A stretch of 64,000 bases of DNA. Source: Neoechinorhynchus agilis. Lineage: Eukaryota; Animalia; Acanthocephala. The stretch is taken from assembly GCA_051530055.1 (NCBI GenBank), contig CM121341.1, positions 9,402,784-9,466,783 of the forward strand, read 5' to 3'. Below, in pieces: positions 44,520-58,433 of the stretch. Under the pieces are notes generated by a model that made no database searches, was not told where the DNA came from, and saw only the letters and a program-made list of their open reading frames with translations. The translations under genes were made by a program, and so were the position numbers. Position 1 is the stretch's first letter. The number at the start of each line of letters is the position of its first letter.

Positions 44520-45310
44520 ATTCTTAGCTTCTCTCTTTCCTCGGCTGTCGCTATCACGCTAGCGGCATTGCCTCGTTGTACTGTCAGCGAGATATTTTGT
44601 CACAGGAATACATTTGCTCGTGCGTCGCCGGTCGTTTCTCTCAATTTCTTCGAGAGATCCTGGAGCAGAGTGAATGCCGAGCTGCCAAGCGCTCCATACG
44701 TCTCTACTCCGAAGGGGACAAAATAGTGGGCCCTTGCTAAATCCCTATATTTTCGTATTATCCTCCCTTCCGCTGCACCTCCAGCGATTTCGAGAGAGTA
44801 CGGAATGTTGCTTACTGTGAGGGACGTGGCGTCCCAGAGAAGGCATTTGCCCTCCCGCCACGGAAAGACCGAAATTCCGTCGGGTCGACGACTGTCAAGT
44901 CGACAAAGATGGGAGGGGAAGTTCGCCGTTCTCAACGCCCGAAAAATTGCGCTGTTGATCTCAGAATGGCATGAGAACCTTCCTTGTGACTTTCGGCGAA
45001 CGAGACCGTGTCTCTCGAAAGCATCAACCAAAGACCCACATCGACAGCGATGGGCGTGCATATCGGGAGACCAAGTCTTAAGGACACTGCGATCCTCGTT
45101 ACCTCATCAGTGAGAAGAGTTCCCACGGATGCCAAAGGAACAGCCTCCAACCACGCCCCCGATTCTCGTGTCGAAACTGCCAACAATCTAATTCGGACGA
45201 CCCCATCGCGGGAACCTGAAAGTAGAGAGCGCAACGATCATTTCCGCAGACAATGCGAGGTAGAGTTCTGGACATCAGTTAGGCAAAGCTACAGAACTGT
45301 TCAACAAGAG
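44520..45310 (-). mobile_element. 5-prime-truncated CRE copy (REL domain and 3-prime UTR)
   Basis: [39 protein letters not shown] and FVPFGVETYGALG; the 3-prime end closely matches 58850-59000. Confidence 0.9.
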
Positions 45311-45596
45311 GGATGAACTTTCCGTTTCGATGTTGCTACTATAACACACTTCAAAGCTCCACGTGCCTTTGTAGATTTCTGAAGAAGCCGTAAGACGTTA
45401 AATGCTCGAAAATATTGATTTTTCTTTATATCTACAACAGCCCGTCCAAGTGCCAATAAAAAACCTGATCAATCACGCGGCTAGCAAATCAAGTTGTATT
45501 GCACATGATTTTTCGAAATGATGCGATTAAACTTTATTTTTTAAATGTCTGCTGGAAGAGAACTTTATAAGTTAAAGTCAAATATGTGAACTTGAA

Positions 45597-45847
45597 ACAG
45601 CAAATCAAGTCTAATGTATCTACGAGCCTCCCAGATCCATCTCTTCACAACTCGGAACCGTCGCAAGGACACTTGCAGCGTTGCCGCGCTGGATCGCGAG
45701 ACCTATGTTTTGCAGGAAGAACGTTCCTGCTCTTGGGTCTCCGGTTGCGATCCTCATCTTCCTTGAAGGATCCACCTTAAAGTTCTTGGCCTCAGCACCG
45801 AAGGCACCGAGCGTCTCAACGCCGAAAGGGACGAAGTGATGCGCCCT
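45597..45847 (-). mobile_element. 3-prime piece of the CRE element whose body lies at 48243-50830
   Basis: Reads RA-HHFVPFGVETLGAFG...QNIGLAIQRGNAASVLAT, continuing exactly where the 48243 piece stops (KYDELLRA). Confidence 0.85.
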
Positions 45848-45984
45848 GAACAAAACAACCGCGAGATCTTCCAGTAAACCCAGAAAACGTACGGCTGATG
45901 TTGAACTTTCGGATAAATCAGTAGTAGCTGAACCAAAGAGAAGGTTAACGGAACACGAAACGGCCGCATCAGAATGAAACTGAA

Positions 45985-46806
45985 GTGAAACGTTCACGTC
46001 CTGATCGTAACGATCCCGATAGGTCAGTTCAGCGAGTTTCATCGTATGGCGTTTCCACTGGATCAACTCAATGGCCATTGGTTCAAATGGGACAATCCTT
46101 CTCCCAACAGCAGCAAATAAATCGCGGCCACCAACGATCGATTCAACAACGACAGCAAAATGCCAATACGAGTGTTCAATCTAACTACATGGCGTCTATA
46201 CCATCGTACGGTGAAAGTTTTGTTCAACCAATGAGCAGTCAACAGGAAGTTCCGTTGGATCTGTCGATGCCGCGAGGACGCTATCCAATACAACAAGACA
46301 ACCGAGGAAATGCCTACTCGCAGCATTCTTACCAATTGCAAAGGTATCCGCAAACGTGGACCCCTTACGATTTGATTGCGATTCAACCTCAGGCGCAACC
46401 CATGAGCAATGCCTATAACAATTTCCAAGGAACTTCATTATCGACCTCTAATGAGTACGTCTATCGACCAGGATATTCCCGAATGATAAATCAATCGGTG
46501 CCAAATAGTATGGAAGTTTATCCTGGAGGATATTACGCCGAAAGGCCCTATATTAATGAACGTTTCCCACAGCGACTATATCATCGAGCAAGCCAATCCA
46601 ATCCATCGAGAATGGTACATAACCTTCAAAACTATTACGATGGAGCACGATGGAGTTCGCAACAACCGAATAATTTTCAAGGAATTCCTCAGTTTCCTAC
46701 ACGAATGGAAATGCCGCAAGGAACAAATTATCGAATGGCTTACAATCCTAATGCGCTGGTCCCACGCAGCCATCAACGACGTACTAGAAACCGATCACGT
46801 CGTTAA
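45985..46806 (+). pseudogene. 5-prime-truncated duplicate of the Q/N/S/Y-rich tail ORF, lacking the TBP-like domain
   Basis: 273-codon frame still open. The listed start is GTG; the first ATG is codon 35. The upstream linker is frameshifted by the 14-nt deletion. Confidence 0.7.
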
Positions 46807-47681
46807 TAGGAATCGTTTATATGCTGCAAATTAATTCGATTTGTTTGACGCCACTAATCGAATATTTTCAACTAAGTGCATTTAGCAAAGGACATTTCCG
46901 ATTTTTGAAAGACGAACGTCCTGTGGAAATTAAGGAGATTACGACTGTTTTGGTTGTCGTGGAAGATAAATTATGGGAGGAATCGATATAAGTTTTCGAT
47001 CGGCAATGGTTGGATCAGAGACAATTGGATGAGCTGATTTATGGTATAATGATGTAGGGACTCGGTGATAACTTTATATTTGTTTCGGAAGGAAAATCGC
47101 GTTTAATGTGGAAAAACTATGTGGTTGTCTTTTATAGCTTTTCGGGCGCCTATGGAATTGCACATAGTCAAAGAAGTTAGGGATTCGGTTACTATTCGAG
47201 TTTTTAGGGTGTGAAATATGTTTTAGGGTATTCTTTAAAAGCGATTGGTTAGAGGGACGGCGGTAGCATGCGATGATGGTACTGATGCTTTATTCGGATT
47301 GTTGAGGTTATTGGTTACGATAGCTTTTTTTTTCGTAAATTCGACGCTAATATTTCCAGAAACGAGTTCATTGTCCAAATCTAAAGATTTATGTAGCGAT
47401 TACGGGGTTCAAAAGGTAAAATTTATGGCGCGGGGTGTTTCAAATGATAATAAAACTTAAACACACCTTTATTATCCAGTCTATAATCACTTAAAGTCTC
47501 TACTTGTGCCTTTAAAATGCTAAAATCGTTATTAGAACATTGCGTTTCTTCAAAAGTTGCGAAATAAATATATCCTGAAATGCTAACAACTAGAAAAACT
47601 TTCTGACCAATCGGTGAACAGATTTACGTTCATTTAATTGAGATCATTTCATTAAATAAATTTAAGAGCACGTCTCCAAGT

Positions 47682-48233
47682 TCAGCTTGTCCACATTATG
47701 TATAAAATGCAACGGTCACCATCTGAACCATCTTCTTGTGTTGTTGAAGTCTTAGATTTTCTAATTTTTCCAGAATTTTGGTTTTTCAAATTTTTATTAA
47801 CTTTGGATATAGCCGTATATTTATTTTCGATGTTTGATGTTGGATTGACTTCTTCTTTTTGCTTCAAACCCCCAATAACCATAATTTTATTGTTGTCCTG
47901 ATTGACGACTTCATCAACAATTTTTTTCCAGCCTTCGCGATAGTCTTGCCACGTTTTCTTGTTTTCATGATGGAAGGATAGGTTCAAATCACTATCTTTA
48001 CTGTTGCTGCTGATATCAACTTTCTCTTCTAACTCCGTAGCCCCACAAAAGCATTTTACTAATGCTCGCAATATTCCGCGAAATCCTTTTAATTTTTTGG
48101 TCTCCTTAGTGTTCGCACCATTGCTAATTTCACTTAGTTTTGTATCACGGCTCTGCTTAAAACAAAAGCATTTTCTCATCACTAAACGAAAAGATGTTAA
48201 GAAAAAATATAAAATTTAATACTTACTTTTCAT
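47682..48233 (-). pseudogene. Duplicate of the tail-anchored protein gene with most of the TM segment deleted
   Basis: Keeps the ATG exon and the 45-nt intron, but ends IMWTS* because of the about 193-nt deletion. Confidence 0.7.
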
Positions 48234-53400: not shown

Positions 53401-53849
53401 ATCGATTATTCTCTAGCCTCTAATAAAGTGGAATATTTATGTTAAATATTGTTGTCTTTCTAGAGATCTGCTTCCGGGCATGAAACGGAAAATAAAAGCG
53501 CAAAATCCTTCAATCGACTTTAATTTCAGATGAACGATAAAAACAGTCCAAAGAAATCTAAAACTTGCTCTACGGGAGCCGAGGAGGTGCAATCATGGGC
53601 TCTCGATAAGAATGATGAAATTTTCACAGATCGCTATACTAAAATATTTATTTCATGTTTCCAATGCTCGTGATCGAGGTAAAAACAATTAGACACGTAA
53701 GCCGGGTACAAGGAGCAAATAAAATTTAATAATGATATTATCCTTTACCACAAATTCATGCTCCATTTTGAATAATCTTTCTATTTTGCATTGATAAATA
53801 AATCACCAAAACATATTGTTGGTCGAATAAAAACTGTTCAAGAATACTT

Positions 53850-54562
53850 GTTTATTCTTAACAACCCAGTTTAGCCGGCATTACGCAGGCAAATACGAAC
53901 AAAACGTAACACTATTACACTTCATGCCTTTTGCTTTGACGTTAATGCTTTGGTCTTTAGTTCATTATCTAATGCAAATCGCCTATAATAAATATCAGTG
54001 CTTTAAATCTAAATGAATATTTAAAATCATGTTACGGAAAATCTTCTTCGACTCCAAAGAAAACCATTGAATTAATTTCAAAAGCTTCGCTTATCGTAAT
54101 CATGAGAATTAGATTTCGTATTCTGTTTACAAAATTAATTGGCTTAGAAATAATCGTATTTTCAACTTATTTTGATACAGTGACTCGGAAACAAATTAAC
54201 GTTTAGACTGTTTTATGGCGAAGAAATTAAAATGATTTTGTTTTAAAATTCGGTATTTCGGAGGCACTATCCTGTACGCGTTTATGGAGGTTGTAAATTG
54301 TTTCGAGATCAAATTGAAAGTTATAAAGATCGATTTTGACAAACGATCTCTCACTGCGAAAAATACCTTTATAACTTTCAATTTGATCTCGAAACAATTT
54401 ACAACCTTGATGAACGCGTACAAGATGATGCCGAAATATCGGATTTAAAAATAAAATCATTTTAATTTCTTCGCGATAAAACAACCAATACGAACAATTC
54501 AATATTCAAACATAATTCTCGTTTATTCTTAACAACCCAGTTTAGCCGGCATTACGCAGGCA
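53850..54562 (+). repeat. 42-bp perfect direct repeats (53850-53891 and 54521-54562) enclosing about 630 bp
   Basis: GTTTATTCTTAACAACCCAGTTTAGCCGGCATTACGCAGGCA occurs twice. Confidence 0.92.
54209..54512. mobile_element. Palindromic MITE family, copy 2
   Basis: Long near-perfect inverted arms (GGTTGTAAATTGTTTCGAGATCAAATTGAAAGTTATAAAG / CTTTATAACTTTCAATTTGATCTCGAAACAATTTACAACC); shares outer arms with 35583-35830. Confidence 0.8.
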
Positions 54563-55005
54563 GACCTTATTGAAGAATAGATAATCAATATTCTATCGTT
54601 AAAAAATGATCAAAAACTACGCTAATTAAAATTCAAAAATCGCCTGGCATTGCCATCAACGGACTCTCCTTTGCAGTCTTCGATTTGATTTAATTAGATG
54701 CTAACATTCTGCCGTTAAACACGATTAGTTCGCTAACGACTAGTGAGGAATCCTTTTTACAGACTTGAATTTCGTTCACTACCAATTAAATGATCGCTTA
54801 CAATTCGAACCCATGTCGTTTTTCTGGATTATACGGAATGCAATTATTTTGAATCTTTTAAAATTAAAAACAACTGGCCATTGGAAGTCTTAAACCAAAA
54901 ATTCAGTGATCAAAACGGTTCTTTTTCCTGCTAGGCTAAATTTGCGCCCCATCGCGTCGAACTATAAAATTAACCGAAGATTAAATCTATACGTCATATA
55001 ATTAA

Positions 55006-55029
55006 TGAACACGTGACGTCACGTGTTCA
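55006..55029. promoter_or_regulatory. Perfect 24-bp palindrome: E-box / CRE / E-box
   Basis: TGAACACGTGACGTCACGTGTTCA contains two CACGTG sites overlapping a central TGACGTCA, about 225 bp upstream of the TBP-like ATG. Confidence 0.6.
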
Positions 55030-55254
55030 ATCTCCCTCACCCCCGGATTCATACTTTCCCAAATATTTAATAGCAAAGAAACAAACAAATTGCTCGGCCT
55101 TATGTATTTAGAACTTCGAAGTTGAATAGAAGGTGCTTCAGCCCAATAGTTCTCCTAAACTTGAAAAAATTGACCCACATAGCCTCCTTGTATCGAATTT
55201 GCTTTAAATTTATAAACAGAAGTAGATTTCAACTTACTTTTACTTTAGACAAAA

Positions 55255-55872
55255 ATGACATCGTCTCTCACTACCGCCTACAACTGCAGTGCAAAATTCA
55301 AAATGAACGAAGTGAGTCTTGTCGAACTCAAGAGGAAAATGCCGCATACGGAATTGCAAAAAGGACCAACAATCTTATACACTGTACCAAATGATCGTGA
55401 AGATTTGATGTTTCCTGGTGCAACGGCTCGCATTTTTAGAAGTGGGAAAGTCGTCGTAAATGTACAAAGCGAAGTACAAGACGGAGCAAAGTTATTTTCT
55501 AATCATGTTGCTGAACTCATTGGTAACATTTGCCTCAGAGCCGGACAAATGAGCGATTATTCGATTACAAATATCGGATTGAATATAACTTTAAAATATT
55601 GCGTTGACCTTGACTTGTTATTTAACAATTGGGAAGCAATGAAGTTGCCAGATTTGAGGAAAACTGTAAAGCGGGTATATTATTACCCAGAGTTCTCCAA
55701 AGTCGGAGAAATTTGGTTTAGGGAATCAAGCGTAAAAATTACTGCTCATGGCAATGAAATGCTCCAACTTTCGGGTACAAGCGCCGAGGAGATGATGGAG
55801 AAATTTAGAATAGTTGAACCCCTGCTAGAACATTTCGAAGAAAACAAACAAACGCGCGAGATCTTCCAGTAA
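55255..55872 (+). CDS. Highly divergent TBP-family (TRF/TLF-like) domain, intronless
   Basis: Two-repeat TBP pattern: YNCSAKF ~ QNIVST; PGATARIFRSGKVV ~ PRTTALIFSSGKMV; DYSITNI ~ DFKIQNM; YYPEF ~ YEPELF; LSGT..EEMMEKFRIVEPLLEHF ~ LTGA..EIYEAFENIYPILKGF. A TTTACTTTAG acceptor lies just upstream of the ATG. Confidence 0.8.
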   Translation: MTSSLTTAYNCSAKFKMNEVSLVELKRKMPHTELQKGPTILYTVPNDREDLMFPGATARIFRSGKVVVNVQSEVQDGAKLFSNHVAELIGNICLRAGQMSDYSITNIGLNITLKYCVDLDLLFNNWEAMKLPDLRKTVKRVYYYPEFSKVGEIWFRESSVKITAHGNEMLQLSGTSAEEMMEKFRIVEPLLEHFEENKQTREIFQ

Positions 55873-56815
55873 ACCCAGAAAACGTACGGCTGATGTTGAA
55901 CTTTCGGATAAATCAGTAGTAGCTGAACCAAAGAGGAGGTTAACGGAACACGAAACGACCGCAAAAGACGAGCAACATCAGAATGAAACTGAAGTGAAAC
56001 GTTCACGTCCTGATCGTAACGATCCCGATAGGTCAGTTCAGCGAGTTTCATCGTATGGCGTTTCCACTGGATCAACTCAATGGCCATTGGTTCAAATGGG
56101 ACAATCCTTCTCCCAACAGCAGCAAATAAATCGCGGCCACCAACGATCGATTCAACAACGACAGCAAAATGCCAATACGAGTGTTCAATCTAACTACATG
56201 GCGTCTATACCATCGTACGGTGAAAGTTTTGTTCAACCAATGAGCAGTCAACAGGAAGTTCCGTTAGATCTGTCGATGCCGCGAGGACGCTATCCAATAC
56301 AGCAGGACAACCGAGGAAATGCCTACTCGCAGCATTCTTACCAATTGCAAAGGTATCCGCAAACGTGGACCCCTTACGATTTGATTGCGGTTCAACCTCA
56401 GGCGCAACCCATGAGCAATGCCTATAACAATTTCCAAGGAACTTCATTATCGACCTCTAATGAGTACGTCTATCGACCAGGATATTTCCGAATGATAAAT
56501 CAATCGTTGCCAAATAGTATGGAAGTTTATCCTGGAGGATATTACGCCGAAAGGCCCTATATTAATGAACGTTTCCCACAGCGACTATATCATCGAGCAA
56601 GCCAATCCAATCCATCGAGAATGGTACATAACCTTCAAAACTATTACGATGGAGCACGATGGAGTTCGCAACAACCGAATAATTTTCAAGGAATTCCTCA
56701 GTTTCCTACACGAATGGAAATGCCGCAAGGAACAAATTATCGAATGGCTTACAATCCTAATGCGCTGGTCCCACGCAGCCATCAACGACGTACTAGAAAC
56801 CGATCACGTCGTTAA
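55829..56815 (+). CDS. Basic linker plus Q/N/S/Y/P-rich low-complexity domain with PLDLS; probable C-terminal continuation of the TBP-like protein in the +1 frame
   Basis: The frame is open from 55829, overlapping the TBP-like 3-prime end: KTNKRARSSSKPRKRTADVELSDK...EVKRSRPD...EVPLDLSMP...RRTRNRSRR. There is no ATG until 56096. Confidence 0.7.
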   Translation, partial: NISKKTNKRARSSSKPRKRTADVELSDKSVVAEPKRRLTEHETTAKDEQHQNETEVKRSRPDRNDPDRSVQRVSSYGVSTGSTQWPLVQMGQSFSQQQQINRGHQRSIQQRQQNANTSVQSNYMASIPSYGESFVQPMSSQQEVPLDLSMPRGRYPIQQDNRGNAYSQHSYQLQRYPQTWTPYDLIAVQPQAQPMSNAYNNFQGTSLSTSNEYVYRPGYFRMINQSLPNSMEVYPGGYYAERPYINERFPQRLYHRASQSNPSRMVHNLQNYYDGARWSSQQPNNFQGIPQFPTRMEMPQGTNYRMAYNPNALVPRSHQRRTRNRSRR

Positions 56816-57827
56816 TAGGAATCGTTTATATGCTGCAAATTAATTCGATTTGTTTGACGCCACTAATCGAATATTTTCAACTAAGTGCATTTAGCAAAGG
56901 ACATTTCCGATTTTTGAAAGACGAACGTCCTGTGGAAATTAAGGAGATTACGACTGTTTTGGTTGTCGTGGAAGATAAATTATGGGAGGAATCGATATAA
57001 GTTTTCGATCGGCAATGGTTGGATCAGAGACAATTGGATGAGCTGATTTATGGTATAATGATGTAGGGACTCGGTGATAACTTTATATTTGTTTCGGAAG
57101 GAAAATCGCGTTTAATGTGGAAAAACTATGTGGTTGTCTTTTATAGCTTTTCGGGCGCCTATGGAATTGCACATAGTCAAAGAAGTTAGGGATTCGGTTA
57201 CTATTCGAGTTTTTAAGATGTGAAATATGTTTTAGGCTATTCTTTAAAAGCGATTGGTTAGAGGGACGGCGGTAGCATGCGATGATGGTACTGATGCTTT
57301 ATTCGGATTGTTGAGGTTATTGGTTACGATAGCTTTTTTTTTTCGTAAATTCGACGCTAATATTTCCAGAAACGAGTTCATTGTCCAAATCTAAAGATTT
57401 ATGTAGCGATTACGGGGTTAAAAAGGTAAAATTTATGGCGCGGGGTGTTTCAAATGATAATAAAACTTAAACACACCTTTATTATCCAGTCTATAATCAC
57501 TTAAAGTCTCTACTTGTGCCTTTAAAATGCTAAAATCGTTATTAGAACATTGCGTTTCTTCAAAAGTTGCGAAATAAATATATCCTGAAATGCTAACAAC
57601 TAGAAAAACTTTCTGACCAATCGGTGAACAGATTTACGTTCATTTAATTGAGATCATTTCATTAAATAAATTTAAGAGCACGTCTCCAAGTTCAGCTTTA
57701 TCTCAATTTCTAAAGTGTAACGTTAAGCGCAAAAACGTCGGGAAACTTTGTCATTAATTTCGAACAAAGACGAAACACGCAAACGATTGAAAGTAACGCG
57801 GAAACCAATTTAGAAACTACTTTATTC

Positions 57828-58433
57828 TCAGTAACATTTGAAAAATGTGCTCCCAACAACAATTGCACAAAGCAGCATAATAAATATCGCCGTCCACATT
57901 ATGTATAAAATGCAACGGTCACCATCTGAACCATCTTCTTGTGTTGTTGAAGTCTTAGATTTTCTAATTTTTCCAGAATTTTGGTTTTTCAAATTTTTAA
58001 CTTTGGATATAGCCGTATATTTATTTTCGATGTTTGATGTTGGATTGACTTCTTCTTTTTGCTTCAAACCCCCAATAACCATAATTTTATTGTTGTCCTG
58101 ATTGACGACTTCATCAACAATTTTTTTCCAGCCTTCGCGATAGTCTTGCCACGTTTTCTTGTTTTCATGATGGAAGGATAGGTTCAAATCACTATCTTTA
58201 CTGTTGTTGCTGACATCAACTTTCTCTTCTAACTCCGTAGCCCCACAAAAGCATTTTACTAATGCTCGCAATATTCCGCGAAATCCTTTTAATTTTTTGG
58301 TCTCCTTTGTGTTCCCACCATTGCTAATTTCACTTAGTTTTGTATCACGGCTCTGCTTAAAACAAAAGCATTTTCTCATCACTAAACGAAAAGATGTTTA
58401 GAAAAAATATAAAATTTTATACTTACTTTTCAT
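57828..58433 (-). CDS. Orphan tail-anchored membrane protein (about 186 aa) with N-terminal Cys motifs
   Basis: An ATG AAA A exon, a 45-nt GTAAGT..TTTAG intron (58382-58426), then MRKCFCF..KCFCG, a K/N/S-rich middle and a C-terminal hydrophobic ILYIMWTAIFIMLLCAIVVGSTFF. Confidence 0.7.

Follow-up and report, generated by a model that had tools for sequence, protein, structure and literature searches.

An apparently frameshifted locus of Neoechinorhynchus agilis is probably one intact copy of a young, multi-copy family of TBP-fold genes

The locus, its reading frames and its transcripts

The window analyzed, 64,000 nucleotides of the N. agilis (Acanthocephala) chromosome record CM121341.1, contains a TBP-like gene whose coding sequence appears to be split between two frames. 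The ORF listing of the window includes a 205-aa ORF at 55255–55872, and a +1 frame runs without a stop from 55829 to 56815 (987 nt), with its first ATG at about 56096, approximately 267 nt in. Both frames had been described in an earlier note on this DNA, which joined them at an A-rich "slippery" stretch into a single protein. The features of the locus are as follows.

53655–53678, plus strand: small 5′ coding exon of 8 codons (MFPMLVIE), from one spliced RNA contig, with a GT donor at 53679–53680
53679–55248, plus strand: intron 1, 1570 nt, GT..AG, from an RNA contig, with the acceptor TTTTACTTTAG/ACAAAAATG
55006–55029, no strand assigned: perfect 24-nt palindrome GAACACGTGACGTCACGTGTTC with the core CACGTGACGTCACGTG, E-box/CRE-like, found as an opposite-strand self-match inside intron 1, about 230 nt 5′ of the main ATG
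55255–55830, plus strand: TBP-like saddle core, codons 1–192, two repeats, from Pfam, BLASTP to the N. agilis protein P0005, an AlphaFold2 model, Foldseek and selection
55831, plus strand: extra C that causes the frameshift, absent from the related loci L001, L002 and L003, from reads and from contigs, most likely an assembly consensus error
55832–56056, plus strand: opening segment of the tail, basic and NLS-like, 75 aa with 27% K+R (KKTNKRARSSSKPRKR...KRR), from composition
56057–56815, plus strand: low-complexity tail with a basic C-terminal end and the stop, from composition and the full-length model
45849–47796, plus strand: 5′-truncated, tail-only copy, 98.4% identical to 55843–57698, adjoining retrotransposon sequence and encoding P0002

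The A-rich run GAAGAAAACAAACAAAC is indeed present at 55837–55853, but the two frames do not join there. The window was compared with L001, a 6.8-kb contig that encodes the 521-aa protein P0001, annotated as partial. They share 99% DNA identity, and the sole frame-changing difference is the extra C at 55831 (GAA[C]ATTTCG), located 6 nt 5′ of the A-rich run and outside any homopolymer. A four-way alignment of the window, L001, L002 and L003 showed that L002 and L003 also lack this C. When the 55831 column is removed, the window copy has 519 codons and 0 internal stops. Since the paralogue alignment places the difference at this base, a frameshift at the A-rich run was ruled out. An intron bridging the two frames was rejected after a hand check because the sole GT in the overlap (55869) has no in-frame acceptor at a plausible distance; the alignment, which reduces the frame difference to one inserted C, makes the question moot.

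The 90% cluster of P0001 also includes P0008 (519 aa) and P0007 (558 aa), and for each of these proteins the TBP-like core and the tail are encoded in a single frame (...EKFKIVEPLLEISKKTNKPARSSSKPRKR...). In the three full paralogues core and tail occupy a single, intact 519-codon frame reading ...EPLLE-ISKKTNK... at the junction, which bears out the proposal that they make up one protein of about 520 aa. The sequence PLLEISKKTNK crosses the junction in P0001, P0004, P0007 and P0008 as well as in the older, diverged P0006. The natural junction peptide is ...EPLLE/ISKKTNK..., with the codons GAA ATT TCG specifying E-I-S; the peptide predicted in the earlier note, HFEEKTNK, was incorrect, as P0001, P0004 and P0006–P0008 have EISKKTNK.

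RNA contig sets, which carry no strand, cover approximately 55058–57150. In a contig of the RNA set X1, the 28 nt abutting 55247 match 53649–53676 exactly and nowhere else in the window. The 5′ exon defined by this contig reads ATG TTT CCA ATG CTC GTG ATC GAG and then GTAAAA (boundary GATCGAG/GTAAAA), and L001 and L002 retain both its ATG and its donor. The exon is read in frame with the main ATG and extends the protein by the 10 residues MFPMLVIETK. The annotated partial P0001 starts with TKMTSS, which corresponds to the intron 1 acceptor. On this evidence the gene would not be strictly intronless. The extent to which the 5′ exon is used is judged from that single RNA contig. A 47-codon ORF (MNDKNSPKKSK...FQCS, then stop) lies in another frame at 53530–53672, after TTTCAG, and overlaps the 5′ exon; it is possibly an upstream ORF, or else an exon of a different transcript.

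The sequence CTATAAAA is located about 40 nt before the palindrome of intron 1, and both are kept in L001 and L002 and absent from L003. Judging from these motifs, the palindrome region is a possible internal promoter within intron 1. A contig of the second RNA set, X2, skips 51 nt (55187–55237). The deletion is RNA-only, being found in no DNA read and no assembled paralogue, and its CT..AC ends rule out a sense intron and correspond to a minus-strand GTAAGT...AG intron. The contig, seemingly derived from the L003 copy, may come from an antisense transcript that is spliced and covers the gene's 5′ end.

Origin of the extra C

Reads and RNA across the junction, which the earlier note had proposed as a check, were compared over 54700–57300 using the Illumina WGS run X8, the RNA contig sets X1 and X2, and the DNA contig set X5. 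The C at 55831 is left out in 97 of 100 X8 reads, while at most 3 of the 100 may carry it. Every X1, X2 and X5 contig covering the position lacks the C, including an RNA contig that spans 55744–55883 in the unshifted frame. Loose ends of X1 and X5 contain ...TGCTAGAA immediately 5′ of ATTTCG.

Four to five near-identical copies contribute to the reads stacked over 55831, and therefore the share expected from the window copy must be weighed. Nine alleles are private to the window copy with respect to the assembled copies (55686, 55740, 55808, 55854, 55936, 56266, 56302, 56305 and 56507), and they are found in 14–34% of the X8 reads. Those situated 23 nt on either side of the C, a distance that fits inside a single 150-nt read, occur in 18% and 29% of reads, as opposed to no more than 3% for the C. 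Junctions specific to single other copies are represented by 13–17 reads; these are the truncated-copy junction, seen as a loose end at 55855 in 13 Illumina reads, and the L003 boundary at 55058. Approximately 20 C-bearing reads would be expected and at most 3 were seen (binomial P about 6e-7 if the share is 0.2, and 2e-4 if it is 0.14), the missing C being tied to the window copy by allele frequencies and by the private SNPs 23 nt away, not by read-by-read phasing. Since C-bearing reads fit the reference better than C-less reads, mapping bias opposes, rather than favors, the conclusion that the C is an artefact.

The assembly is a MaSuRCA hybrid of Illumina and Nanopore R9.4 reads with very little HiFi, followed by Hi-C scaffolding and then TGS-GapCloser. 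The DNA came from about 50 pooled worms and single females, and the pool of about 50 was the source of the Nanopore R9.4 reads (PMC12690905). The genome paper reports 17.2 Gb of Illumina data in two libraries and 42.5 Gb of Hi-C (PMC12690905). Run X8 comprises 12.3 Gb and comes from the same sample as two Hi-C runs whose sizes add up to 42.5 Gb. From its size and the shared Hi-C sample, X8 seems to be one of the two Illumina libraries produced by the project itself.

The private alleles at 14–34%, the C at 3% or less, and the paralogues and contigs without it indicated that the frameshift is most likely a consensus error, and most likely not a real feature of the gene. The C would be a long-read error left in a repeated region. 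Of the three origins considered in the earlier note, the best fit is thus an assembly error, though one that inserted a C into non-homopolymer sequence rather than a homopolymer error at the A-rich run. A fixed disabling mutation is unlikely with 97 of 100 reads lacking the base.

It is improbable, though less so than the other alternatives, that the C is real and marks either a very recent pseudogene or a null allele that segregates in the population and was caught by the pooled Nanopore reads. The base is present in the deposited assembly outside a homopolymer, up to 3 of 100 Illumina reads retain it, the DNA source was a pool of worms together with single females, and pseudogenes do arise in the family, as seen in the truncated copy at 45849 and the decayed copies in L003 and L004. 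The C may then be a rare allele in the worm pool. Nonetheless, the private SNPs that flank it are several times more frequent than the C itself, and the window copy has no lesion other than the C. Its dN/dS against the other copies is 0.27–0.45 overall and 0.05–0.17 in the core.

A split into two genes, a stand-alone 205-aa TBP-like protein and a separately initiated tail protein, is very unlikely. Annotated tail-only copies exist (P0002, P0003 and the window segment 45849–47796), and RNA depth is 2–5 times greater over the tail than over the core. However, the excess is explained by reads from the additional tail-only copies, the tail frame opens with a long stretch devoid of ATG, three paralogues encode core and tail in one uninterrupted frame, and an RNA contig bridges the junction in the unshifted frame. 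As for the A-rich stretch as a site of programmed +1 ribosomal frameshifting or of transcriptional slippage, for which the two long overlapping frames and the A-rich run could be invoked, it can practically be dismissed: the inserted C sits 5′ of the run, the shift is absent from all paralogues and RNA contigs and from all but a negligible share of the reads, the three full paralogues and the older copy encode the junction in a single frame that yields EISKKTNK instead of HFEEKTNK, and with the C already missing from the RNA contigs and 97% of the DNA reads nothing remains to be shifted.

The TBP-like core and the C-terminal tail

Sequence alone gives weak evidence that the core is related to TBP, and the fold search and the similarity to P0005 make the relationship clear. 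The Pfam TBP model PF00352, suggested as a check in the earlier note, gave a partial answer. It matches residues 10–83 of the ORF with an E-value of 3.3e-4, but the score of 20.9 bits is below the gathering score of 22.9 and the match is limited to repeat 1. Scores are lower for the intact paralogues, 16.6 bits for P0008 and 15.5 bits for P0007, against the same gathering score. Yeast TBP matches residues 53–122 of the ORF with an E-value of 1e-3. An exhaustive phmmer search of the core against 1.84 billion representatives found three proteins, all from N. agilis, and no homologue outside this species. They are the paralogue P0004, the chimeric model P0006, which contains an old copy, and P0005 (E 2.4e-6). 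P0005 is the clear TBP-family protein of N. agilis, with two repeats and a Pfam TBP score of 94.9 bits, and "TATA box-binding protein-like 1" is among its nearest ESM Atlas clusters. When the ORF was aligned pairwise with P0005 by BLASTP, the E-value was 4e-15 over residues 54–192, which links the core to an undisputed member of the family; identity to P0005 is 26%. The ORF and P0005 also have in common about 11 inserted aa in repeat 2, which are not found in canonical TBP.

The AlphaFold2 model of the core shows the element order S1-H1-S2-S3-S4-S5-H2 twice, in agreement with the two half-repeats that the earlier note had read from the sequence. The confidence of this model is low (pLDDT 58) because the underlying alignment holds only paralogues and P0005. 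When this model was searched with Foldseek against the PDB, the top 44 matches were all TBP, with E-values from 5e-9 to 4e-5 over about 200 columns and TM scores of 0.42–0.48. The top 30 in the Swiss-Prot AlphaFold database were all TBP, TBPL1 or TBPL2. In a feature search of the ESM Atlas, PF00352 was present in 88 of the 100 nearest clusters. A profile built from the alignment A2 matched TBP in the PDB with an E-value of 1e-15; since A2 includes P0005, a true member of the TBP family, this match is not independent evidence, and the profile served only to place the Phe positions. The TBP fold and the family-level homology of the core were accepted on these grounds.

Binding of TATA-binding TBP proper involves four intercalating Phe residues, F193, F210, F284 and F301 in the human protein (PMC3142196). 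In alignments to yeast TBP, the sole strict equivalent kept in the core is F61 (IFRSG, within ARIFRSGK), which matches F210. The other three intercalating positions are occupied by P38, S156 and H170. The earlier count of about two Phe equivalents thus stands for the residue in IFRSG, but the Phe of PEF (F155, in YYPEF) lies one residue before the third position. With three of the four kinking Phe residues gone, the protein is unlikely to bind the canonical TATA box. Within the family, it is TLF that is unable to bind the TATA box, and TLF varies strongly across species (PMC3142196).

The composition of the tail agrees with the description in the earlier note of a basic segment followed by a region rich in Q, N, S, Y, P and R. 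The basic stretch may act in nuclear targeting, as its composition suggests. The remaining 252 residues contain 14% Q, 11% S, 9.5% R, 9% P, 9% N and 8% Y. In the full-length model there is no secondary structure past residue 197 and the pLDDT is 22–36, which fits disorder, although the underlying alignment is shallow. Protein searches with the tail found no homologues outside N. agilis, and the matches were only to proteins of its assembly GCA_051530055.1. Searches with both the core and the tail therefore agree with the view that the protein is lineage-specific. The length variants of the tail among the copies, an added CCC at 56155 and a 42-nt skip at 56455–56496, are all in frame. The CCC insertion is found in 27 of 128 reads and in L003, and the 42-nt skip in 36 Illumina reads as well as in RNA and DNA contigs.

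Family copies, constraint and proposed function

P0007 and P0008 are encoded on the window's own chromosome record, CM121341.1, which is 19.4 Mb long. P0008 lies a few kb beyond the window end, and P0007 is within the range 9,303,092–9,326,651, reversed with respect to the strand of the P0008 locus. As segmental duplicates, the copies range from 3.6 to at least 5.7 kb, with 96.4–97.8% identity and differing boundaries. An older copy with 76% protein identity and frame breaks is found 4.5 Mb away inside P0006, and further older copies, at 63% and 47%, are neighbors of young ones; no ORF of at least 100 aa is left in the one at 47%. P0006 (778 aa; L004 6308–7690, at about 13.97 Mb of CM121341.1) combines an RRM-like N-terminal part with the frame-broken older copy; this gene model is probably a chimera that covers a pseudogene. 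Remnants of a retrotransposon ORF (...HHFVPFGVETLGAFG...) on the minus strand at 45586–45848 and 44600–45234 adjoin the tail-only copy at 45849.

The core of this family is under purifying selection and its tail is near-neutral. Comparison of the four full young copies yielded 7 synonymous and 2 nonsynonymous changes in the core (P 4e-4 against neutrality), and 8 synonymous and 21 nonsynonymous changes in the tail (P 0.29). Pairwise dN/dS is 0–0.17 for the core and 0.3–2.3 for the tail.

The comparison with known members of the TBP family suggested more than one partial likeness. As in TLF/TRF2/TBPL1, the worm protein has a divergent two-repeat TBP saddle that has lost kinking Phe residues, and the Atlas clusters of P0005, the nearest relative of its core, hint at the same group. 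However, the worm gene is multi-copy with no detectable orthologue outside N. agilis, and it adds a C-terminal tail of about 327 aa, whereas vertebrate TLF consists of the core only, about 186 aa (PMC3142196). The insect TRF1 and the vertebrate TBP2/TRF3 are also single-lineage TBP duplicates, often with germline or developmental roles (PMC3142196), but they retain high core identity and TATA binding, while the worm protein is far more divergent and its family consists of several 96–99% identical segmental duplicates together with decayed older copies. Canonical TBP (PF00352; yeast SPT15 and human TBP) shares with the worm protein the fold, the repeat topology and the repeat 1 motif IFxSGK, including its Phe, and it differs in sequence (12–20% identity), in the intercalating Phe residues, of which the worm protein keeps one of four, and in the position of the low-complexity region, which in the worm is C-terminal and not N-terminal. 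The "inverted architecture" described in the earlier note accordingly holds relative to vertebrate TBP. Invertebrate TRF2 proteins also bear C-terminal extensions.

The explanation that best accommodates these results, with a probability of about 0.85, is that the locus holds an intact copy of a young, multi-copy TBP-fold gene confined to N. agilis and that its frameshift is a spurious C; a TRF2/TLF-like function of the product is inferred. Counted from the main ATG, the predicted product would be about 519 aa long, and the 5′ exon would bring it to about 529 aa; it would consist of a divergent N-terminal TBP-fold saddle followed by the basic NLS-like stretch and a disordered tail of about 250 aa rich in Q, S, R, P, N and Y. 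It would be a nuclear TBP-related factor, probably derived from the divergent TBP-family gene of the worm that encodes P0005. Fold, residues and composition are consistent with a TRF2/TLF-like role in which the protein would nucleate or sequester general factors at TATA-less promoters, and the tail may provide low-specificity multivalent contacts. A more specific and tentative proposal, which we consider possible but rather doubtful, is that the family encodes a recently amplified, acanthocephalan-specific core-promoter factor incapable of TATA binding, whose rapidly evolving, disordered tail of Q, N, Y and R recruits or condenses the transcription machinery for a lineage-specific program, for example in the germline or syncytial tissues. 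Separately, the C may be a real, segregating null allele, at odds much lower than those of this promoter-factor proposal.

Lineage-specific TBP paralogues are a route by which animals diversify transcription initiation. The TBP-like gene family is not a new kind of system. A multi-copy, core-constrained relative of TBP that is deficient in the TATA-contacting Phe residues and has a long disordered C-terminal tail, in a little-studied phylum of parasites, is a modest but real addition, and if the proposal is correct it would represent a new TBP/TRF branch in which the core comes first and the tail last. At the level of the assembly, a probable one-base consensus error has broken a gene model within repeated sequence of the hybrid Nanopore/Illumina data set, and other "frameshifted" genes of this assembly merit an equal check against the reads. 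The proteins of the family are annotated only as "hypothetical protein".

A 184-aa ORF on the minus strand at 57828–58382 was duplicated along with the TBP-like gene in every segmental copy and is also found at L001 5772–6328 and L003 14571–15125. It has a hydrophobic, tail-anchor-like C-terminal segment and no Pfam family on record. The DNA reads also contain rearranged family copies not recognized among the four loci compared, in which 56141 or 56156 is joined back to 55467 (five reads each). In another 14 DNA reads the start of intron 1 (GGTAAAAACAATTAG...) is fused straight to 56111.
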